Of a stretch of DNA of 64,000 bases, positions 214-14,569 are shown piece by piece (the stretch's first letter is position 1; each line of letters starts with the position of its first letter). The notes under the pieces were generated by a model. That model did no database searches. It was not told the origin of the DNA and saw only the letters and a list, made by a program, of their open reading frames with translations. Source of the DNA: Ascidiella aspersa. Lineage: Eukaryota. The position numbers were made by a program, and so were the translations under genes. The stretch covers positions 24,118,001 to 24,182,000 of the forward strand of contig OZ004609.1 in NCBI GenBank assembly GCA_963924565.1. Reading direction: 5' to 3'.

Positions 214-341
214 AATATTTCACTTTTACGATTTACAGTGTGCGGCTATATCAGTTTTAACCTTTGCCCCGAGTCGGTAAGCGAGTAGTCTCGAGTAGCG
301 GTACTCCACTTCCGAGTCCAATGAATTGTCTGCTTGTGCAG

Positions 342-3300
342 GTAATGTAGACTCCATGAGCTGGATGAACTACGCCTGGAAGTATGACGGCTTAAAAAAG
401 CGCAAAGCCGGCGACTTCTACAAAAACTTCAAATTCACTTTTTCCCGTGAAGAGCTCCTGATCCTTCGCCATCAGCCTGACAAGGTTTGTTTTAAAATGC
501 TGCTGCACCAATACTGTTTACTCCATGTTGAACCTGGTGATAATAATTTCAGTATAGTTGTTCATTGTGATACCTTTGTACGGACTGAACGGAAAAAGTA
601 CTATATTATTGCTTTAACTTAAGTGGTTGAAACAAGTAATTGCTATAGATTTCTGTAGACGTAAATTGCTATATATTTCTACATAAAGTCGAAAGCGTAG
701 AGATTTCCCATAGAATTTTTTACTGGTACATACGTTACAAGATACTAACGCGATTGTTTGAATCGGATTGTTTAGACCAGTGGTTGTTAACCTTTTTCAT
801 TGCTGCACCCCTTTTAAATCACCAACCAATTCTCGTACTCCCTTCTAAAATTGCTTAAATAACAAAACCATCGTAATTTTATTTATACACAAGTAACTAA
901 TAACTCAATAAAGCAATACCGAAATGTGAGTTAGTTTTACATTTAATTGAACAAAGAACTAAATTACAGTAATACATTTTCCGTGTCTGACTTAACATTC
1001 CCATACCTCTTGGGGGTGCATGTACCCCTGGTTTAGACTGTGAATTTCAGTATCTTCCTAGCGTTTCGATCTTGAAGAAAATTTTCAAACAATGAACAAC
1101 GTAAACGAGGCTTGCCTTTTTTAGCTATTTAAGCAGGCCTACAAAGAGGCCAACGATGAGGTTTTTGAGTTTGTGCCGCCTTCCAAGTCGGCTCCTCCAG
1201 ACTACCTGGGCGGATACGGATATGAAGATGAAGGTTACGGAAAAGCCGGGTACGGTGAATACGATGACGAGGAAGAGTTGGAGGACGACGACGAACAATA
1301 CGGAGGATACCAGCAGGGCCCAGCTAAGAGGCGCAAAACAGAAGTGAAAGCCAGAGAGGTCGTGTTTGACATTAACACCAAGAAAACGCCCTACAAGAAG
1401 GTACGTTTTTTACGTAATAAAGCAATTTACTTGGGTACACTAGTCACTATGCATGGATCTGTAATGCAGCTTGAGGATAAATTACAAAGGCAAAAAGGTC
1501 GAGTATATTGACATCATCTTTATTGAGACGTTTCGATACGAGCTTGTATCACTGACACTGATGCAATTTATTATAAACAATTTACATAAATAAAATTAAA
1601 CGTTTACCAATTACGCGGTAATGTTGTTGTATGGTAGTACTAGAAGGTAGTTTGTCGTTAGCCCTCACGTTCGCAACTTCAATATAGATGTATTTGCACT
1701 CGGGTTATTCTGCCGCTGCAACAGGTTTAAATTTAAGTTTGCAGTTGGTGTAATGACATTTTAATATTTAAACCCAGGGCGACATCGTTGAACTGCAGAC
1801 CAGCCTGACGAACGTTGGAAAACTGCCAGCAAAGATCGAGGCCAATTTCGAGCCGGGTGGTGGAAATCTTACTGTCTATGTTACTGACCCGCAGGGTTAC
1901 GTTAAGGTATAATTCCAATCTGCAATAACACACATTGCTACTCCTTGGTGGTATAACTTTTATAATGATTGGTGAACGAAGTGCAATTGCGGTGTTTGTG
2001 AGAAGGTGACTTGTTAATAATGTTTTTTTGCCACTCGCCCGCATCGCATATTGCCGATTTTGCGAGTGCCCTTCCCGTGGGAACGAAACTAAAGACTATT
2101 GTGCCTGCGCATGTCCCGAGCAATTAAGCCCGGGACCGGTACTGGTCCGCGGGGAGTTGGTTACCGGTCCGTAGCAGGGTTGTTAGAATTTTGTTTAAAC
2201 ACGAACTGTACGTAAAAACCTGGTAAAAAGTAAAAAATAATTAAATGTATTTTCATATTTAAACCACATTTACCTTCGTTTTAATATAGCCTACTACTCC
2301 ATGGTTGATTGGTATGATTAAAAAAACACAATTAGCATCAAGCTCTCGTGAGGTTCAAAACAACTAGTGTGCTGTGGCCATATGAGTTACATAGCACGTT
2401 CACACCATCATTATTGCATATTTTTATTGCAAAATCTAACTTCTAGAACTTACAATATATCGAAGAATGGGCTAAAATATCATGTGTTTTATTTAAAATA
2501 TCATGCAGGTTATTTTAAGTGTGCTCACCTTAAAGTGCAATAGAATTTCATGCAAACAATGTTTATAAACTATTTCCCATAATGAAATAATTTATTATTT
2601 TGATATTTAGGCAGGAAAGGTTTCGATAATACGTATGTATAATTATTAGTTTTAGCCTCTATAATTTTAGACTCTATAAAAATGACAAAAAAGTCAAAAA
2701 GCCTAATGATTTTTCTAACATTAACCACGTTAAAAATGATTTATTTTTGTCAAAAAAAAACATTCTGTCAAGCCTTGCACGTATGTCTATCCTACACTTT
2801 TCAGTTCTCGGTCTGTGGTTCGTACTTTTTTTATATTGCCATTCATTTTTTTCGTTTTTGTATTACGTTAGCTTACTATTGAAAGTGTCGCGTAGGGCCT
2901 GGTCAAATAAGATCATACATTATTATATGTTATACAAAAGTGTCACTTCTTTTGAAAGAATGCTTTAAATATCCCTATTTTGACAACTGGTAGGAATGTA
3001 GGAATTGATAATAATGATATACCAGTGTAATTTAAGAAAAAACGTAAAGGCCTAAAAGTTTTATTGATATGAGCAGCGGGCTGGGTTAAATTGCTTGGCG
3101 GGCCGGATGCCGCCCGCGGGTTTCAGTAAGATAAGAATTCCTAAATGGGAGCATCTCTTTGCAGCGAAACAAGCATAAGATAGCATTGAAAGTTGTAATA
3201 AATTTCCTTTCCTGAGACAAAATTTTAGTTTTCGGCCGGTCCGCAGTGCCATAAAGGTTGCTGACCCCTGCTCTAAATGACAAACGCCTTTATTGTGCAG

Positions 3301-6300
3301 ACGGTAAAGCCTGTGGCCCAGGTAATCGATTCTCCCACTCGCAACTACGCCATTCTCGGCAAGCCTGGCAGTCGCGACTACGCCGAATCTTACAGCGAGT
3401 CTGTCCCTCTGTTGCAATCTTCCTATCCCATGTTCAACAAGGTCGGAACCTACAAAGTGAAGGCCGTGTACCAGAGTGGCGGGGTGCAGATGGCCTCCAG
3501 TAAGTCTAAAAACAAGTATTAGCTAACGAAAAAACATCCGCTAAGCTGTTTTCGTGTTGGGCAAGGTGCATTAAACACATTACTCGTCTTCAGCGTCTTT
3601 CCTTCTAGTTATCTCGACTTTGAGTTTGTAAAACGCGGCCTAAACGTTTGTAAACTTTCCCTCGTGTATTTTAGTCACACATCTACCTGTGCGCGATGTC
3701 CTACAAAATATTAGTTTTTATTTGTATTACGTAATCTGTTTTTATAGAGTACTCGACCATTACGATTGAAGAGGAAGACGAAGAAGATGAAGCGGCCAAA
3801 TACGAGGTAAGATTTCGTTCGCACATAATAACCCACCCGAGGTGGGATATTATGAAAACCGAATCATAAAGATCGTGACATTTATGCACGATTTTGTCGT
3901 TAAAACAGCCCGATTTGACAGGCTCGACAAATTGAGTGTACGTCCTGAGAAGGAGCTGCATTCCTTTCGTTTTCAGGTGGCAAAAGCGGCAAGTCTGGAG
4001 ACGTCGGCTTCGTACGGCCAGCAGAGCGCCCCAGTTAACTACTGGAAGAAGTTGGCGAAAAAAACCTCCGAGAAAAAGGCTGAGCGCGTCCAAATGATGC
4101 TCCTTCTGCTCAAAGGATTCGCAAAGGACGCGATGGAGGTCAGCGGTGATCGTGGCGCTTCCGGCGGCCGCAAAGTGAAGCTGAAGACCGGAGCCATTTC
4201 GCCGCAGAAGCTGCTTGCTGATACCGACGATCTGCTTAACTACTATCACAACAACGTGAGTCTAGTGCCGGCGCGAGTTTTTTCGAAGTTGCCATTGCTC
4301 GGACGTGAAGGTTGCCTGTATCAGACGAAGGTTAACAAATCGGGTTGTTTAAATCGCCACGAGTTTTTTATTTTCGCACCTTGCTTTTTTGGTTGGATTT
4401 TCGACATGCCTGCCCTCCTACTGAGTCCGGCGAGTTAGTTATTTACACCCAACTATATAGGCCGCGTACGAACTAGTAATTTCCACCACTATAGGTAGAA
4501 CGCTTGTATCTTGCAGTGTAGGCCTTCAACAGGGTTGTAATGTTTGTCAGCACAAAGCTTTTGCTATGAAGTTAACTAGTGTTTTTACAGACAACTTAAA
4601 AAAATAAGAGGGCACACTGAAGCATTGCGGTAGTTTGACGCAGTATGCTAACCATTAAGGGAGGGGCTTTAACGAGATTTTGCAAACCATTATTATTTCG
4701 AACAAATTTTGAATGATTTGCGAGGGTACAACGCTCCCGGGTATATTGCGAGGCCACAACGAAATCACAAAACACAACGTGTCCCGAACAAAAACATGCC
4801 GCCAACGCCAACCGAGTAAATCTAACGTAAAACCTATCCGCTTTAGCCCGGCGTCGACCCGCTCAACTACAATAAGTTGGTGAATGCCAGGAGCCAGTTG
4901 TACGCCAAAGCAAAGAAAGTGCCCAAGGCTGATGGGGAATACGCTCAGCTGGTGGCCGATCTGGTGCGCTTGAAAGAAAACAAGACCGGAATGGTCCAGC
5001 GCGCTATCGATGATTGGGAAAAATTGCTCAGCACACGTAAGACATTGCTTTTGTCGGCTCAAACGATTAACCGACGTTTGGACTTCGACTATAGGTGGCT
5101 CTAGAGATTGTCTGTTGTAGTAGTTTTTTTAATCTGAAACCCCTTTTGATTCCTTAAAATACCAATTAGAATCCGTTCAAAATCCTCCAAAATCAAATTC
5201 GTTTGGTGCCAAATAACAGAGTAGGAAAATTAGTGATTATTTCGCAAAGTTTTTATATACGTCAATTTCAAGAATTATATTTTGTATAAAGTTGATTGTC
5301 GTTAGCTAGGAACAACAACCTCTAAGTTATTTTCGAAAATTGCCAAAACGTTTCGCAGCACATGTAAGAATATATCTAAGCACACTGATATGTTGTGGCG
5401 CACAGTTTAGGAATCACTGCTTCCTACAACCTTAACAAAATGCAAAGCACAAACCCGAGAGTGGTGGGCCAACGTTGATCTACCTTGATTGGCGGACAGC
5501 TTGGGCTTTACCGCTGTGAGAATCGACATGTGCTAAGTTTACTAACACAATGAGCCCTGTTTATACCAACAGCGGAACCCTACGAGTCACCGCCGGCAAA
5601 ACCGGACAGGAAGAAACTGCAGAGCCGCTTTGAGAAACTCTTCTGGTTTAAACCTACGGAGAAGTTCGAGGTGGACAACGAGGCGTCCGGACTCGGTTTA
5701 TCCAGGTCACTAAAACTAAAAAAAACGCGTTTGGTAAAAAATGTTTACTTCGCATTAAACTTCCGCCTCTTATTAGTTCTTTTTAAATGACAATCAATGG
5801 GTTTAAAATCATCGTCGGCTTATTGCAACTAACCGTGATCTAGTTGCGATCATGAATTTAACCTTTGCAGTGGCCTATTGCCTTTAACCAGCGTTTAACC
5901 TCCCACCCACAGTATAAAATAACAATACGATAAAAAATAACTTCCGTTTAGCAGACCGGCGTCGAAACGTTCGTAATCGCTTCCCCGCCATTTCCTCAGT
6001 GAGCTAACCTGTCTGCGCGGCATTTGTCACGTCTATTGCGATTTTTACATTTGTCACGTCCATTACGGATTTGCTGTTTAGTAAACACGACAGTTAAGCG
6101 TTCAACACAACAATAAAAGTTTTCCAAATTGTTTTCGTTTCAACAGACCTTTCAATAACTTCGATGGCGATCACAAGGCCAAGGCGACCTACTTCATTGA
6201 CGAACTGCAAGATCTGGAAGATGAAACCGACGATCTGGACGCGGTTCTTGACTACGCTGAAGCGCGACAGAAGAGCTTTGAGGTCAATCCGTCTTTGTAC

Positions 6301-9300
6301 AAGTGGGCCATCGAGTGCTACGTCGTCCATAGCCCCCTGGCTAAAAGCTACCACATCACGTAAGTGTGTTTCAGCTTTTCGGTGACGGGTGTCCGCTGAT
6401 CCCGAAGGCAAGTAAACTACTTTTCGAAGACGCACGAAGTATAGAGGCGTAAGCGTACAGAACAAAGACAGTAAACACTATAGCCTGTCTTACATTCTAA
6501 AGTAATGAAGCACGCTCCTGAGAAAGCTCTTCAACGTAACAATTCGTCTACCGTGCCACGTGTTTTTCATATCAACCAAAAAAACAAAAAGCAAACGAGA
6601 GTTATAAGAACTTACTTTATCGTGAAATTTGCGTCGAGTTATCATCTATTCCCATTTTCGCAGCTATCCAGAGCCTAAGCCGATGGCGGAGGAAATGTTT
6701 TCCGCGGCCGCCATGATCGAGACAAAACGCAGCGGAAAACCGGCAGAGAACTGGATGAACTATTGGCGCTGCGACGCAGATTTCAACTTTCACCACAGGT
6801 TTGAACAATAGCCAGCAGGTTATGTCGAACTCCCAGTTGTTTAGCCTAATATGTTATTATTTTTAGCGTATTGTACAGAGACGCGATATTAGCTGATACA
6901 GTCACGTGGACGCCGTTTTTTAATATTATTTTCTATATGCAAAGTTTTTCACCTATATGTTAATATTGCTAAACCCTAGTAATTTCAATTTTCCTGACAT
7001 GTTATTGCAATGAATGCATTCGGCATTTTAAGACCGGCACAATATACTTAATACTTATACATGAATTCTGCACTGCAGGCATTGGCACACCGTTTATTCG
7101 AGATATTCGTTCTCCCAGGCCTTGGCCAAGAGACAGGGCGAGTTGTTTCTCTACATGCACTCGCAAATGCTGGCTAGATACGATGCCGAGCGTGAATCCT
7201 GGGGATTAAAACCCGTAAAGGTAAATTGTTTTGTTATTCGTATCGTTCTCGTTACCGCTTTGATACCTTACTGCGCTATAAATTGGATTAAAGAGCCACC
7301 ATTCAATAGTTTTCAAACAAAATATGTTTCACATTAACTGCACAGCGGCTCAAGATTTACTGGTAATCTTCCACAGGCTTTCGGATACAACGAGACCCCG
7401 CGCGGTTTTAACGCTGGGTTTGAGTTTCACAAAGACCATGGTTGGTATTTGCCTAGAGAAGATTACAAGCCTTGGCCAGAAGATTCCAAAGACACTCAGG
7501 AGCGTTTCGAAAATGAGCTTCTCAAATTGTACGAGAACAAGTCGAGCGAGAACTAGTAAGTAATATACAAAAAGGCATAAGGCCATAAATTGTCTCAACC
7601 CCAGCACTATTTGTCTTGTGATTTTGTGAATGTTAGCTTTTTTAACTTATATATTTTTATTGGTTCAGCAATGATGGTAGACCCATTGACGCCAACGATG
7701 CAGGATTTCTCATGGAACCATCAAACTATAGATACTACGATTTTTTCGGTGGCTTTCATAACGCAGGACACATGGCCTTTTGCGCTGGTTTACCAGAACA
7801 TGTAAGGTATTGTAGATTAATACAGATGCGAGTAGTTGTCAATCCTTGGTAAAAGTGCATATCAGATTCTCGACTAGCGGTAAATGCGGAGCTTAATTTG
7901 ACTTTTTTATCCAATTAAACCAAACCCTCTTCAACGAACTTTTGCAAAGAAGTCTTAATAGGGTGAACTTTCAAAAGGAAGTGAGCGTATTTCTGTACTT
8001 TGCGGTTAAGAAAATTGATTTAGTATTGGGATGAACCCTCCGTATAGGATGTTTATCTCCCACACTTTAAATCCATTCGATCGCCATTGGCTAAGACCCG
8101 TCCATTTCGCAGTATACCACCTACATGGGGTCGTCGGAATGCGCTGTTCGCGATCCGATCTTCTTCCGCTGGCACAAGAGAGTCGACAATGTAGCGGACA
8201 ATTATTTCGCGTCTAAGTTAACCGAAATGGAAAATGAAAACCCCGGCGTGATAATTGAGCCCACCGACGTGCTCGTTCAGCCTGGCACCGATGCCCCTGA
8301 TGGATTTGACAAGTAAGTTTCTCGTTTTGCGATTGTAAAAGTAATGAATGGCGGTCAAAAAAATTGTAAAGCAGCGAACTCGTTGCTTTAGTGTTGGCTA
8401 AGGCAAACAAACGCGAAACGTTCTAAACTTTCGGTTGTTTGTTTTCACAGATACGACGAGGACGAAATATATTTTAAGCTTCTATATGTTTTACGTTTCG
8501 TTCTCAGCGTAAACACTGCGCAATTAGGAAATAAAAATAGCGTATTTTAAAACTAGCTTTTTTCGTAATTACACAAAGTAAATCTATTATACCAGATCAA
8601 CGTAATTTACTAGTCACCGGGTGTCCCAACGCTAAATACTTTCATGAATACTTTATAGGCAAGTTTATTGATATCCAGCACAAGGTTATGACATTCTCTG
8701 TAAACTGCAGGTACTGGAAATGAAATATAGACAAACTCTCCAAACTTTGTTTTCACTGTGCCTTGCTGCATCAATAAGGCCCTAAACACAGTACGCGGTC
8801 GTTAATTTTCCAGATTCTCTAATGGCAAGTGGACGAAAAAGAATTTTCCTCAAAACGAAATTAAAACCGACCTGAAGAAAGCAACATTGATGTACGAATG
8901 GGATAACAAGCTCACCCACGAGCCTTTCAGCTTTCACTTCCGTATTCGCAGAAGCCCGGGCACTAAAGGTTCGCACGTCATCTGATTTTTTGTCCAAAAG
9001 AAAATTAAAACTATACGAGGCAACAAATTATTTAACATTTTTACCGTATTATTTTTACCGTAACCATCCAAATATTTGGTTTTATCTGTGCTTTGCAGGC
9101 ACATTAAACCTCACCGTCCGCGTTTTCATCTGTCAGGAGCGTCACGTCTTGAACCGAAAGAGGTGGATCGAAATGGACAAATTTGTTCACCGGTAACTAT
9201 GTCAGCAGCTTCTTTTTAAACGAGCGTCACAAGAGTTAAACTGTTTTGTGTTTTTTATAATGCTGCGGCTCATCGTCATCCCTAATACCATTTGTGCTTA

Positions 9301-12300
9301 TTGTTTTGGTACAGTGTCTGAAAAATGCTACAATGTGCTAATGTTTAAGAAACGTGTGCCTGAATATATGCTGAGTGTTGTAAAGCTTATCAAACGTTCA
9401 CTTGCATTTGCTTGCAGCATGCCGGACAAGGTGAACCACTGCGTGCTTAAGCGTCTAGACATCAACTCCTCCGTTATCAAGCGCAAATTCGAAAACCTGG
9501 ATGAACAGGAGAGTAAGTTTTGTGCAACTGTGGCGGGCAACTGCGAATGCGGCTGGCCCTACGAGATGATGCTTCCCCGTGGGACTAAGGTGAGAATTAC
9601 CTTCTGTTCTGTTGGTCATCATAACAGATAAATCAGCTGTTTGAACTTAAAGGGTGGGTGGGGGTTCGGACCCCCCCCCCCTTTTCGTAAGTGACATTAT
9701 CGTGTTTTGTTCGTTTTTGTCATAGTTACTAATTGGGTCACGCGTCTTAAGCTAATGCGAAACTAAAATCACGCCTTTCGTTATTCGTTCGGGTTGGCTA
9801 ATCAGCAAGTGTGTGTTCGACAATTAATAATATAAATCAAGCGGTTTCCGCTTTTTTCTCTTTGAAAACGTCTAGTTAGACGGTGCTATGTTTCTCGCTG
9901 TTTGTTGTCTACGTTAAAAATATCAGATGTTGGTGTAAGACTGGGGTCGGCAACCTACTGTGATTCATCGGCCCGTCGCCTCTTTGACAAACTATACACG
10001 AGTTCATTACAAATACTTTTTGACTATTTTAACTACGTAAATGCGAAAAAATTGCGCTTCGCGCGAATGATCTTACTAAGTCCGGTTTGTTAACGTTTTG
10101 ATGCTGTATTTTGAACTAGATCAGCGCTTCTTTACCGTTGCGCCGTGGAAAGCTGCCAAGTGCGTCGCGGACAAACCGAACACGTATTCAAAAATATTTT
10201 ACATGTATATTTTTTAACATTTTTTATTTTCGGCAATGTAATAAAAACTTAAAAATAAATGAAATAAAATAAATGCCAGTTATATTAAAATAAAAATCGC
10301 GCTCGCTTCGCTCGCCAGCTGTGCCCTCACTTAAAACGGTTATCAAACGTTGAACTAGATTAACTAACTATTAAAGTTATACCGTTTCTTCGAAGTAGTT
10401 TTATATGTCGCGCACATATTTCACGGTCTTGGTTTAGTTTTTCGCCTGAAGTTAACGATTGCACACTAAGCGGTTTCGCAGTTGGCGCCTGGCAGGATTG
10501 TCGATAACGCACGTGTTCGCTTTTGCTGGACGTTAATTGGCTGTTTCGGATGATTTTTTTTCTTGTTATGACGTCATTACCATCGCTATTTTATGACGTC
10601 ATATCCGTCACTATTTTATGACGTCATTAACGTCAGACGAAAAAACAACGGGAAATTCCCTAAGTTGAAAATTCGGAACCCCCCCTTTTTGAATTTCTGG
10701 ATACGCCCCTGCACACCCTTGTGGGTTTTGCGTTTCAGGCAGGCGAGAAATGGTGCGTGGCGGTGTTCGTAAGCAACAACGACATCGACAATATTAAGAT
10801 GAGGACCAAGTGCGGCAGCATGAGCTACTGTGGAACGCGTGACGAGAACTACCCGGATTCAAGGTTCATGGGATTCCCGTTTGCCACCCCCATTTCTATC
10901 AAGGGAACAAAGGCAAGACGTCTAACTTGGAGCTCCAATTCTAATTGTTTCGCGTTTAACCTAAATTCTGAAAAGCTTGCTTTACTTGGTAGTGTTTGCA
11001 CGCGAGAAAAGCTTCTCAAAGCAGTAGCCATGTTTTCCTTTCAGAAATGATTTAGTTGTTGAACAACGTTCGCTCGTGTTGTAAAAAAATATAACGGACT
11101 AGTTATTTCGAGTGTTTTTCCATCAACAGGGTTTTGATAGAATAGTAATGTTAACCCAAGGATGCTTGTTAAAGGTGACCATCACAAAAGCGATGGAGGA
11201 GATGAGTAACTTCAGCATGGCGCCGTTTACGATCTACAACAATTTGGCTCCGGAGGAAGCTGTATTCAAACCGGAAGAACCTGTCGATGTGTGGAAGCCC
11301 AGTTCTGTCGTGCCAAATGTGGAAGATATCGACTACAGGTAACTGGACATTCGAGTCTTTTGTTGTAAATCATCGCCAAAAATCTATCTTTCTGAAATAT
11401 AACTTTAGATGTTGAAGTGGGCGAAATGCTTTTATATACAAACTTTGTTAATGTCGTTTAAATAAACAAGAGATCAGTGGTATACTCGGAAAGCGACTAT
11501 GTAAGTCTTCGCCCATAATCCGATTAGTTTACTAATTATAGGAGTAAAACGTTTTCTTGTTATGTTAATGACTCGACTGGGACTTGGGCAACCGATCATT
11601 TGAAATGGGACTTACGTTACGTTTGTTTGCAAAAATACTTGACGTGGACTTAGGTTATTGAAGGCTATCCAAACCGACCATTGTCCATTTAAGGCCGAGC
11701 AGATTGACTGGCCGTTTCCGCGTGCTTCTGGATGACCAGGACTTCAGCAAAATGGGCGTTGACCGGGTCAAGTTGAGACTTAAGGGGCGCGGCGAAAAGC
11801 AGACATACACGATCCATGACATGTACTTGGGAACGAGAGACGGCAACTCGCTCAGCGTTGATCCGAAGAGCATCGTGAGCGTGACTTACAAGAATAACAC
11901 CAGCATGGAAGTGCCACCCGACGGCGTATTTACCGACGAGATTGTCCTGCCGTGAGTCTGCCGTGTATTTTTTGACAGCTGGTAGTGCTGTTGCATTTTG
12001 ACTAAATAGTCTTGTATAGATCAGGGGTGGGCAATTATTTTTAGCCGCGGGCCGCATGAGAAACCTAAAATATTGTGGCGGGCCAGGTCAAATATAGGAT
12101 CTAAAATACATACAATATGACGTCATACTCTGACGGTGTAAAACAAATAATCAACCAATGTGTTATTACGTTTGGAGTTGTGCGAAAATGTGCAATTTAA
12201 GTCGGATTTAAAGAAGGTCACGAAACGTCGCACGAAGCGCGAAAAATGTGCGACTATGTTTATTTGAAAATGCAAACTTCAATTTAGATTTAGATGGTAC

Positions 12301-13634
12301 GGGAAGCATTGAGCACCGACTAAAAATGTATATTGCTTGATATATTAGCGTTTATTAAGTTGTGGGGCGCGTTGACCCAAAACTTAAGATTAAAATACCG
12401 AAAAATTTCGTACGAAAAACTTTTACCTATATTTTTTTTCTTCCTTTTCAAAACTTTAAGTTACCGATGTGTTACAAAGTTTAACAAACTTAACCTAATA
12501 TTTATATATATTTTAAATATCAGGCTAAGTTTGTTAAACTTTCGTTGGAGAGAGTGCCACTGAGCAGAGGACGCTATTTTTTCGTAAAGATGCAAAAAAA
12601 TCGCGTGAAACACACGAGAAAGACAAGAGATTCGCGCAAAGCGCGAAAAGAATTTCCGTTTTAGCATTTAGAACAGGCTAAAAATCAAATTCGGCGGGGT
12701 CTTGACAAGATCTGTCAACATGCCCTGGTTTCCGCTTAGCCTATGTATTTTATTGAAAATAAGCCGCGAGTGGTTCTTAACCAGGGGTCCGCAAAACGTT
12801 TTCAGGGGGTCCGCAAAAACTTCTAAATATACCTTTATTGAATTAATTAACGCTGGGAAACATGCTTAATCACAATATTGGTAAGTGATAAAATCACATT
12901 AAGTGTGACGTAACACTTCCATTGTGATGTAACACAAATAGATTGTAAAATGGAAGACAACATTACAGTAGTTCACAACTTCACATGTACTGGATTTTAG
13001 TTTATCGCAAAGATGACATGCGTCTAGCATTGTCAAAACCACAACCATTTTAAGACTTGCTTCGGAGATGCAGCAGCAGAAATCACATTAAAATAAACCT
13101 GACATAAATTATTTTGGTGTTGTCTATTACTAAGGTGCGCTAGGCATATATAGGCGACTGAATAATTAAAAAGCACTAAACGCAGATATTACACCAGAAA
13201 AATGTAAGGGGTCCGCGACTATTTGACAGCATTAAAAAGGGGCCACGTGTAAAAAAAGGTTGAGAACCACTGTGATAGACACTTCCGCCCAAGATAGTAA
13301 GATGGTGTTTCTTTATGGTTTTTATTGTGTATTTCCAAGATAACATTTACAAATCATTTTCGCAATTCAGCTTAAATTAGCTATGTACTACTTACTAATT
13401 CGCTTATTTCTGCCCTGCAGTATCAAGCCCACTGCCGGCACCGACTTTTTTGTCACTTTCACTCTCGACCAGCCAGGCTGCTACGTGAAGAGCAAGATTA
13501 ATCGCGTCAACAGCTACCGAATTCCGCCAAGTTATGATGTGGGCGCCGGCACGCCCCCAACTAACTGGGACGGGATAGATCAGATCCGAAGCACGAGGAG
13601 CCTCTACTGTATCGAGAAGATGGTGGAGTGCTGA
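342..13634 (+). CDS. Multidomain arthropod-type hemocyanin/prophenoloxidase-like type-3 copper protein (5' end upstream of window)
   Basis: Phase-consistent exons 342-484, 1125-1400, 1778-1906, 3301-3499, 3748-3806, 3977-4255, 4847-5036, 5573-5705, 6147-6359, 6664-6798, 7079-7220, 7377-7555, 7669-7801, 8113-8312, 8814-8968, 9099-9192, 9418-9589, 10739-10912, 11175-11338, 11694-11951, 13421-13634 (about 1210 codons, no internal stop). Motifs: CuA FHHRHWH...[10 protein letters not shown]; CuB GFHNAGH...[11 protein letters not shown]; C-domain WIEMDKF, CECGWP..MMLPRG and YPD.RFMGFPF. Confidence 0.92.
778..1030. mobile_element. hAT-type MITE in phenoloxidase intron
   Basis: cagtggtt...cccctg termini; perfect 8-bp TSD gtttagac (770-777 and 1031-1038). 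Confidence 0.75.
6791..8175 (+). other. Binuclear copper site exons (CuA and CuB) of the phenoloxidase-like gene
   Basis: All six expected His ligands are present: HHRHWH and YMH (CuA); HNAGH and FFRWH (CuB). Confidence 0.92.
9650..10711. mobile_element. Decayed or nested non-autonomous DNA elements in phenoloxidase intron
   Basis: gggggttcgga near the left end and ttcggaaccccc..ggatacgcccctg at the right end. The internal segment from about 9940 resembles the element at 29790-30364 (shared atactttttgactattttaactacgtaa). Confidence 0.55.
12022..13272. mobile_element. Cluster of hAT-type MITE fragments in last phenoloxidase intron
   Basis: Left end caggggtgggcaa..gcgggccgc at 12022; a second element agtggttcttaacc...ggttgagaaccactg at about 12769-13272. 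Confidence 0.6.
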
Positions 13635-14569
13635 GATCCTGGCCATATAGGCTTGAGTATAAGTTTTGCGTGTGAATACAGTTTTTGATCTTGTATTCAA
13701 GTAAAAAAAGGCTTCTATATCGTTGCTTGTTCGTCAATGTTGCTTGCACCATAATTGTACAAAGTTTTGCTCAGGAAAATTTAACTTGCTTAAAGTTTAA
13801 ATCGAGTCTGTCTATCTTTGGCCTTTTGCAACGAGTTAACTCCGTTAAGTGTAGCGAGCATCTCATATACTCATCAAGGAATATATTCGCTGCCGCTTTT
13901 GTTACCAAATTGTTGTATTTGTAAAAAAAGGTGTTATCTGCACCGTGGTGTGGTAAATGACTTTTTTGTTTGTTAACGCTTAGAATAGCGATTTAAATTG
14001 TACTGCGTGATGTGCTTTTTGAGTTTGCAATCAAATTTATGCTCTGCTTGGTTTTCCAAATGCACTTGGCCGATTAAAACGAAGTAGATACCGTCTAACG
14101 AGTTCGTTGTGTTAAAATTTATTGACATTTTTGCCTGGGCGTAATAACTGCATGGAGTTGTAGTATTTTTTTTCAAACTAAAATTAGGATTATACCTCTA
14201 GATTCGCAGTAAAATTGTATACCTTTCGCACCTGTTTTGCTGCCACCAATATACCATGTAGTCGAGTAAAATTTAGTGCAATCATTAAGAAACAACATTT
14301 CAGTCTATTTTTGTGGAGGGTTCAGTCTGTATATTTAACGGATTTTAGGCGATTTTGAAAAGCAGGATACTTACATACTTTATAGAATTAGATAATAATG
14401 GTTTATATGGGATAATTGATTGATTGATTTAGGGGAATGATATCGTATGTTCCTTTTCTCTTTTAGTTCTAAGAATTATTACATAACACCACGAAAATAT
14501 AAAAGAACAGCTATGGAAGCTTTCCACTGCATTTCCTGGGGTGCTGGGTTGAAGCGAATGTAAAACCAG

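Follow-up and report, generated by a model that had tools for sequence, protein, structure and literature searches.

A candidate fourth domain of bacterial type at the C-terminus of hemocyanin-type phenoloxidases of tunicates and acorn worms

The protein described here has Hemocyanin M and C domains with copper sites in common with arthropod prophenoloxidases and hemocyanins and with the Ciona proteins known as CinPO; the arthropod proteins typically end after the C-domain. The CinPO proteins were reportedly described by Immesberger and Burmester in 2004 (cited in PMC3730353). In the literature, phenoloxidases (POs) of tunicates and acorn worms figure as relatives of the arthropod prophenoloxidases with a three-domain make-up. 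We add to them a fourth domain, found at the C-terminus of a PO encoded in a 64,000-nucleotide stretch of the Ascidiella aspersa genome (assembly GCA_963924565.1, contig OZ004609.1, positions 24,118,001 to 24,182,000 of the forward strand), hereafter the window; the host genome measures 308.6 Mb in 75 contigs. The open papers searched describe no fourth domain, though Immesberger and Burmester 2004 may mention an extension, and the word "C-terminal" occurs 0 times in the accessible portions of PMC9395347, PMC3730353 and PMC3658974. Solved relatives of the domain reside in bacterial esterases of the SGNH/GDSL type. Prolixibacter, Chryseobacterium and Flavobacterium are the sources of entries 7TOG-7TOK, which are acetyl xylan esterases of the FjoAcXE type (7TOG, 7TOH and 7TOI for PbeAcXE, 7TOJ for CspAcXE, 7TOK for a FjoAcXE domain; PMC9105624). 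Their N-domain is described as three antiparallel beta-sheets, and is termed CBM-like (carbohydrate-binding module-like), not jelly-roll, but fits no CBM family. It packs tightly on the SGNH domain, and residues Arg25, Asn26 and Arg139 contact the bound methylglucuronic acid (MeGlcA)-xylose (PMC9105624).

The hemocyanin-type PO gene of the window extends from ~6.1 kb to 13.6 kb on the + strand. Its two terminal exons, A (11694-11951) and B (13421-13634), together encode ~156 aa, and probably make up most of a fourth, non-catalytic domain of ~170 aa placed C-terminal to a PO of arthropod type. Exon A, supported by profile matches and an RNA depth of 1.3-6.2, would supply the first two thirds of a CBM-like module (RFRVLLDD ... 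GRG..Y ... RDGNSL), and exon B, supported by translation and profile searches, the last third (DFFVTFTL ... PGC ... NWDG ... RSLYCIEKM). The initial annotation had seen the frame continue past Hemocyanin_C at 11694-13634, and its peptides and coordinates are exact on the + strand. Pfam and NCBIfam searches with exons A and B, and with the corresponding exons of a paralogue, gave no match even at E 10. Exon A is 52% identical to residues 646-729 of a Ciona savignyi PO (P0032), and exon B aligns with residues 725-793 of the same protein and with residues 1455-1518 of a Glandiceps PO (P0033). The window PO as a whole is closest to C. savignyi, with about 50-57% identity in the conserved exons (H2YIQ9), while identity to acorn-worm POs is 38-68% over shorter matches.

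Relatives of the domain were searched among 1.84 billion representative proteins with a profile of exon A from the window gene and its paralogue, at E up to 0.001. The 31 matches consist of 6 PO proteins or fragments, all with the domain at their C-terminus, 7 short exon-like fragments, 9 long bacterial-looking proteins and 9 presumed noise sequences. The latter (P0018-20, 22, 24, 26, 27, 29, 31) matched over 2-15 short stretches, mostly at query residues ~31-79, and have been set aside, their sequences unread, as a presumed repeat artefact. Carriers of the domain are known by name in three animals, C. savignyi (H2YIR0, H2YIQ9, H2ZA56), Saccoglossus kowalevskii (XP_006815579.1) and Glandiceps talaboti (XP_077978439.1, XP_077978312.1). 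Outside animal oxidases, the searches made here found the domain only in bacteria, where each of the 9 proteins holds 1-4 copies of the matched unit (best E 5.8e-25). Candidatus Nitronereus thalassa (Nitrospirota) has two such carriers, annotated as "Ig-like domain-containing protein" (WP_313831951.1) and "HYR domain-containing protein" (WP_313831600.1).

The bacterial unit measures ~175 aa, belongs to large secreted proteins, and is repeated between Ig_3/I-set, Big_7, InlB B-repeat, HYR, fn3 or PKD domains; no Pfam family covers it in the module proteins scanned. The repeats are near-identical within one protein (P0002, P0012, P0013, P0023, P0025 set), and modules are alike (50-68% identity) across three phyla. 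P0002 carries four units followed at the end by Lipase_GDSL_2 (residues 1096-1306, E 3.6e-16), and is alone in this among the close module proteins scanned, 9 from the library and one genomic open reading frame (ORF). P0012 contains in addition a glucose/sorbosone dehydrogenase-type domain, and one Verrucomicrobiota ORF an M14 peptidase. When one genome per species was scanned for the pattern, 10 loci emerged, 8 in Nitrospirota (7 genomes), one in Verrucomicrobiota and one in Kiritimatiellae. The module was detected in 1 of 201 sampled genomes of the phylum of the first of these genomes and in 12 of 115 of its family, with up to 13 matches per genome; in the phylum of the Verrucomicrobiota genome 7 of 201 sampled genomes scored at E up to 0.001 (2 close, 5 distant). 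Animal and bacterial copies are collinear over the whole domain at ~25-30% identity, and have the motifs RxFRvLLdG, GRxxGxY, RxGxtLN, SDxi, DxFxTF and W...Y in common. Yet, the bacterial modules form tandem arrays of up to 4 per protein, lie between Ig-like domains and are intronless, whereas the animal domain is found once per PO protein, never in an array, and is split by an intron.

Homology between the two sets was evaluated by profiles built from one set only. A hidden Markov model (HMM) made of 20 different bacterial modules was run on the six-frame open segments, 2125 in number, from the window and the locus of the paralogue. Exon A ranked first (E 4.7e-8, positions 26-99 of 174), the paralogue exon A second (E 3.7e-6), the paralogue exon B third (E 5.1e-4, positions 105-170) and the window exon B fourth (E 0.53, positions 108-168). 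The exon B matches lie in collinear order and do not depend on the exon A query by which the family had been found. Scaled to 1.84e9 sequences, the E-values of this HMM against PO tails were 3.6e-14 and 4.8e-14 in Saccoglossus (positions 3-168), 1.1e-12 and 8.3e-11 in Glandiceps, and 3.2e-4, 4e-3 and 9.7e-3 in C. savignyi, and two PO-type fragments, P0021 and P0030, were recognized at 7.9e-7 and 1.5e-4; the acorn-worm tails align to profile positions 3-170. When an animal-only profile was compared by hhalign to the bacterial modules, the probability was 99.6% and E 9.8e-25 over 163 columns. Reversed and 30 column-shuffled profiles served as controls, the best of which reached E 0.013 with the module set, and 0.12 with the set of SGNH N-domains described below. 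By simple BLASTP, Glandiceps and Nitronereus sequences match at E 6e-8.

More distant similarity links the domain to the esterases. A mixed profile matched in the PDB residues 48-172 of 7TOG_A, labelled "SGNH hydrolase" (E 6.6e-8), followed by 7TOJ (2.7e-3), 9KQZ (2.9e-3) and 7TOK (0.017), and a bacteria-only profile matched 7TOG at residues 43-175 (1.3e-7), 9KQZ (5.9e-4) and 7TOK (5.4e-3); a literature search on the 9KQZ codes found no relevant paper. Similarity to the solved FjoAcXE-type N-domains is hence found at the profile level. Four Verrucomicrobiota ORFs of 420-475 aa, retrieved by the module profile, consist of an N-part not modelled in Pfam and a Lipase_GDSL_2 C-part, and display the sequence pattern given in the initial annotation. 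To the N-domains of these four, the animal-only profile aligned by hhalign with probability 94.3% and E 1e-7 over 125 columns, the bacterial modules with 97.3% and E 2.5e-11. The four rows had been chosen for matching the module profile, and the comparison of modules with SGNH N-domains is not independent, while that of the animal-only profile largely is. The initial annotation saw behind the PO an extra domain akin to the accessory domain at the N-terminus of SGNH/GDSL hydrolases. That view is upheld by the latter comparison (controls at E 0.12 or worse) and by the PDB matches of the profiles that include bacterial modules. In turn, the closest bacterial kin of the PO domain are not SGNH N-domains but the repeated modules of surface type, and the solved esterase domain is reported as CBM-like with three antiparallel beta-sheets, not as a jelly-roll (PMC9105624).

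We regard it as likely that PO tails, the modules of Nitrospirota, Verrucomicrobiota and Kiritimatiellae and, more distantly, SGNH N-domains form one superfamily of beta-sandwich domains not modelled in Pfam. According to profiles over ~125-140 positions, the FjoAcXE-type N-domains, and with them 9KQZ/9KR0, belong to the same superfamily as the PO domain, and have a comparable size (~170 aa). Differences are marked, however. Identities are ~20%, and the esterase domain is N-terminal and packed on the SGNH catalytic domain, whereas the PO domain is C-terminal to a copper oxidase; no GDSL match occurs in the window PO gene, and hence no fusion of the domain to the N-terminus of an SGNH/GDSL domain. 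Some results weigh against this reading. The match of the window exon B to the bacteria-only HMM is weak, and the animal-only profile has 7TOJ as its sole match in the PDB, at E 1.3, which is not significant alone. Arg139, within the motif GHPGSRTT, is invariant in the four SGNH N-domains, but its equivalent is unconserved in alignments of bacterial modules and PO copies; the MeGlcA-binding arginine is not kept in the PO, which, like the missing classical CBM pocket of the esterase domain itself, speaks against a plain transfer of the esterase function. Arg25 and Asn26 fall outside the aligned range, and the residue comparison concerns Arg139 alone. The superfamily supplies a label, with 7TOG as structural template, for a module left unannotated across hundreds of residues in bacterial surface proteins as well.

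A second PO gene occurs in the same genome on another contig (C6, about 3287500-3298700), with exon order and tail as in the window gene. Its terminal exons have the same intron phases as exons A and B, are 40% and 35% identical to them, and contain no stops. By type, the paralogue goes with C. savignyi H2ZA56, to which its two tail exons are 51-52% identical. A mixed domain profile devoid of sequences of this genome detected exactly four loci in the 308.6 Mb (4 of 5 scored candidates), namely exons A and B of the window PO (E 4.9e-20 and 2.5e-5) and the two exons of the paralogue. The domain is therefore single-copy per PO gene, and confined in this genome to the two PO genes. Two cysteines (PGC and LYC, window 13476-13481 and 13605-13610) do not vary between the two paralogues and C. 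savignyi, and are missing in the acorn-worm copies; they possibly form a disulfide specific to the tunicate module.

Exon A is preceded by AG at 11692-93, is entered in phase 1 and left in phase 2, and has its donor, GTGAGT, at 11952; exon B follows the acceptor CAG at 13418-20, and its last codon is the stop TGA (13632-34). The intron upstream of exon A (11339-11693, +, GT..AG, phase 1), placed by sequence, shows RNA depth 0 in 11328-11639, and that between the two exons (11952-13420, +, GTGAGT..CAG, phase 2), also placed by sequence, contains high-copy repeats; both phases match those of the paralogue. In an RNA run of the same species label, from which ~6% of the reads were taken, no splice junction reached the threshold of 3 reads at which junctions were listed. 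Depth, in a single direction, was 1.7x at 10808-10911, 1.5-1.8x at 11120-11327, 1.3-6.2x at 11640-11951 and 0.4-2.8x at 13408-13700, and was zero at 11328-11639 and 13304-13407, a pattern that fits a + strand transcript, provided that the library was stranded in the usual way. Proteins on record for C. savignyi, Saccoglossus and Glandiceps continue through both junctions of exons A and B. Splicing is probable on four indirect grounds: sites are canonical, except for an apparent GC donor at 10913, phases agree with the paralogue, RNA depth is limited to exons, and database proteins cross the junctions.

It may be argued that the similarity is fortuitous, or that the frame past Hemocyanin_C is non-coding and had been mis-annotated by read-through. 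The lack of a listed junction read, and of any Pfam or NCBIfam match for the exons, would be in line with this. Yet, E-values down to 1e-20 at the genome scale, a conserved paralogue with identical intron phases, orthologous proteins in four other clusters from three named species, and RNA depth that is exon-limited and single-direction reduce the likelihood of this explanation to virtually nil. The remark that the segment is not contamination holds as well, the domain being part of an intron-bearing animal gene.

Phylogenetic relationships were analyzed by a maximum-likelihood tree of 35 rows, in which 4 SGNH N-domains served as outgroup to 7 PO tails and 24 bacterial modules; the window domain was omitted because its exons may not be joined. 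All PO tails fall into one clade (100/100), within which the acorn worms are together (94/84), and POs plus modules split from SGNH N-domains at 100/100. Long branches lead to the tunicate rows, and to rows of PO fragments devoid of a species name. Since the tails of C. savignyi, Saccoglossus and Glandiceps form one clade, the fusion predates the tunicate-hemichordate split. The module would thus have been joined to the PO once, before that split, and inherited with its introns since. Judging from sequence comparisons, deuterostome POs carry an undescribed, anciently fused domain of bacterial type, a dated candidate for the capture of a domain across kingdoms.

Bootstrap trees gather the modules into a single clade in just 33% of cases, so that the PO clade may fall at more than one place among them. 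A bacterial module captured by an early deuterostome is the most economical reading, and the probable one, as the outgroup is bacterial in every case seen. Some features of the modules speak against it, and would be expected had the module been born in animals and later been taken up by marine bacteria, or had an old domain been lost nearly everywhere with no transfer. The modules are rare, patchy, and 50-68% identical across three phyla, with short branches (0.1-0.5) compared to a PO stem of 1.48, suggesting a recent spread, and adjoin animal-like I-set/Ig_3 and HYR, as well as fn3 and PKD, domains. Their monophyly with respect to the PO clade, as said, is recovered in just a third of bootstrap trees. 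On the other hand, the next relatives, the SGNH N-domains, are all bacterial, both in the 4 Verrucomicrobiota ORFs and in the PDB entries from Prolixibacter, Chryseobacterium and Flavobacterium, and the animal domain has been found on one protein type only, in this genome on its two PO genes only. Reverse transfer, or no transfer, is for these reasons unlikely, and passage from bacterium to animal is preferred.

The initial annotation had connected the domain to actinobacteria. According to this view, the module was acquired specifically by tunicates from actinobacteria, paralleling cellulose synthase, and directs the PO, by glycan binding, to the cellulosic tunic. The homology to accessory domains of SGNH hydrolases on which the proposal relied is real, and the window PO is indeed closest to a C. 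savignyi PO. However, the domain is not tunicate-specific, being found at the same position in the tunic-less Saccoglossus kowalevskii (XP_006815579.1) and Glandiceps talaboti (XP_077978439.1 and XP_077978312.1), and the tree unites all animal copies at 100/100. The nearest bacterial sequences are modules of Nitrospirota (Candidatus Nitronereus among them), Verrucomicrobiota and Kiritimatiellae, the latter two of the PVC (Planctomycetes-Verrucomicrobia-Chlamydiae) group, and no actinobacterial sequence turned up in any search, though none was aimed at actinobacteria. A tunicate-specific actinobacterial acquisition is thus very improbable. Because the domain is shared with acorn worms, there is no basis for a link to the tunic or to the transfer of cellulose synthase, and an attractive but wrong tie to the origin of the cellulosic tunic can be removed.

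By analogy with its relatives, we infer that the domain is an old, non-catalytic binding module. It would tether the oxidase to a polymer or surface (glycan, matrix or microbe), keeping quinone production local; such binding would bypass the uronic-acid site of the esterases, and would not be tunic-specific. Glycans are hypothetical ligands, suggested by the same analogy. The bacterial modules sit in adhesin-like arrays, and an Atlas model of the Saccoglossus tail is nearest to sugar-binding sandwiches of the Glyco_hydro_2_N type, with template modelling (TM) scores of 0.38-0.49 that may be taken as a lead only. Moreover, the solved esterase relative is CBM-like and supplies three substrate-binding residues (PMC9105624). 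Counting against a binding role, binding data are confined to the esterase members of the superfamily, the esterase N-domain is not an independent CBM but packs on the catalytic domain, and no pocket comparable to the ligand site of a true CBM was seen in it (PMC9105624). The domain as such offers a handle on how PO is localised or controlled in deuterostome immunity.

Alternatively, the domain may be a regulatory or assembly part, for instance a cap or pro-region at the C-terminus, removed by cleavage on activation, that covers the active site or brings about oligomerisation. Such a part would resemble the domains found C-terminally in plant and fungal tyrosinases, and the beta-sandwich of mollusc hemocyanin units. 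In plant polyphenol oxidases and mollusc hemocyanins, too, a beta-rich domain lies C-terminal to a binuclear copper domain, but no sequence relation to the PO domain was seen, and those proteins belong to a different copper-protein subclass; the comparison concerns function only. In arthropod-type proteins, the placeholder residue is usually attributed to the N-terminal domain. A regulatory role would agree with the variable ~55-residue linker that precedes the domain (exon 11175-11338; residues 577-645 of P0032 are unmatched in the window), with a metzincin-like protease gene that closely precedes the PO on its strand and, in Glandiceps, lies within the PO gene model, and with the notion that the homologous esterase domain acts by packing on the catalytic domain, not as a free CBM. 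A C-terminal cap is nonetheless unneeded given the Phe placeholder tabulated for hemichordate and urochordate PO members (PMC3658974, accessible portion), and the bacterial relatives reside in repeated arrays typical of binding modules. We therefore view a regulatory or assembly part, the main competitor on function, as unlikely, and keep to a binding module.

The remainder of the PO gene is of the expected make. Earlier exons, coding for the N domain, the copper-binding M domain and part of the C domain, lie at 6139-9589 (+), the borders being the extent of homology matches; by tblastn, P0032 of C. savignyi matches the window collinearly from 6139 to 9589. Pfam Hemocyanin_M (PF00372), the copper-binding domain that marks hemocyanin-type POs, was identified on 7065-7334 (E 5.9e-10, 39.2 bits, the cut-off being 20.8) and on 8095-8313 (20.0 bits), and passes as well in the full-length relatives P0032, P0009, P0014 and P0034. 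The Ig-like Hemocyanin_C (PF03723) precedes the extension in two exon pieces, on 9197-9628 and 10664-11047, covering profile positions 141-177 and 179-230 of 249. Scores of 19.5 and 24.2 bits are under the whole-protein cut-off of 26.4 bits because exon pieces, not a whole protein, were scanned; full relatives score 76-90 bits.

The exon with the last well-matched part of Hemocyanin_C spans 10739-10912 (+; Pfam positions 179-230 on the open segment 10664-11047), with acceptor CAG at 10736-38. Its end has been set by homology to P0032 and by RNA depth 0 in the bin 10912-11015. The following intron, at 10913-11174 (+), is predicted from RNA depth zero at 10912-11119, and comes after an exon ending in ...ISIKGTK; it has an apparent GC instead of GT donor (GCAAGA ... 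AAG), and no junction read was seen there. The linker exon, 11175-11338 (+), encodes the tail of the Hemocyanin C-domain and the linker in an open frame, with RNA depth 1.5-1.8 in 11120-11327 and donor GTAACT at 11339; the split codon AG+G across 11338/11694 preserves the reading frame. This exon may include the first strand of the extra module (...PVDVWKPSS...), without statistical support here: the bacteria-only profile does not extend into 11175-11338, whereas it covers the equivalent part of the acorn-worm proteins, from profile positions 3-5 onward.

A protease neighbours the oxidase in more than one animal. The Glandiceps protein XP_077978312.1 (P0033, 1525 aa) joins a metzincin-like part (residues 1-620), with the zinc motif HEMGHSLNLQH and a weak Peptidase_M10 match, to a PO with the tail. 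As residues 309-350 of P0033 match window 341-472, the protease-oxidase neighbourhood is common to the acorn worm and the animal of the window. Long open segments occur on the + strand between the metzincin exon and the first PO exon, in 1105-5787 (as an example 3791-4435, of 215 codons, and 1125-1508), and have no match to Glandiceps, Saccoglossus or Ciona proteins at E 1e-3. It may be speculated that the deuterostome PO is a chimera of bacterial parts, with a bacterial-type metzincin upstream and a binding module downstream, and represents a surface-targeted, protease-activated immune weapon that predates the tunicate-hemichordate split; we hold this to be a long shot. Metzincin and module might both derive from one surface protein like those of marine Nitrospirota. 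A degenerate zinc-motif-like stretch of the Nitronereus protein P0023, near residue 180, was considered as a counterpart of the Glandiceps metzincin-like part and discarded, as the BLASTP match (E 0.96) is not significant.

Other searches were less informative. A phmmer search of exon A against the PDB retrieved designed "Cake" propellers and proteins like them, a summation artefact of many repeats scoring ~3.5 bits each on a YxGxxDGxL-like stretch. An Atlas search with exon A fell below the usual level of recognition, the best cluster (0.93) being nameless, and a word-index search with residues 620-804 of Saccoglossus P0034 returned the self-match only (1 of 588 candidates), and says nothing of distribution. 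The long intron at 11952-13420 is covered by RNA reads from both directions, as is 10600-10710, and DNA-run word depth is 1e3-1e5 in both places, compared to ~120 in exons. Terminal inverted repeats of a transposon were sought in the long intron, and just a palindrome of 29 nt was found, at 12476-12542. Very high-copy repeats occur at 10600-10710 as in 11952-13300, and many reads continue from them into unlike sequence.

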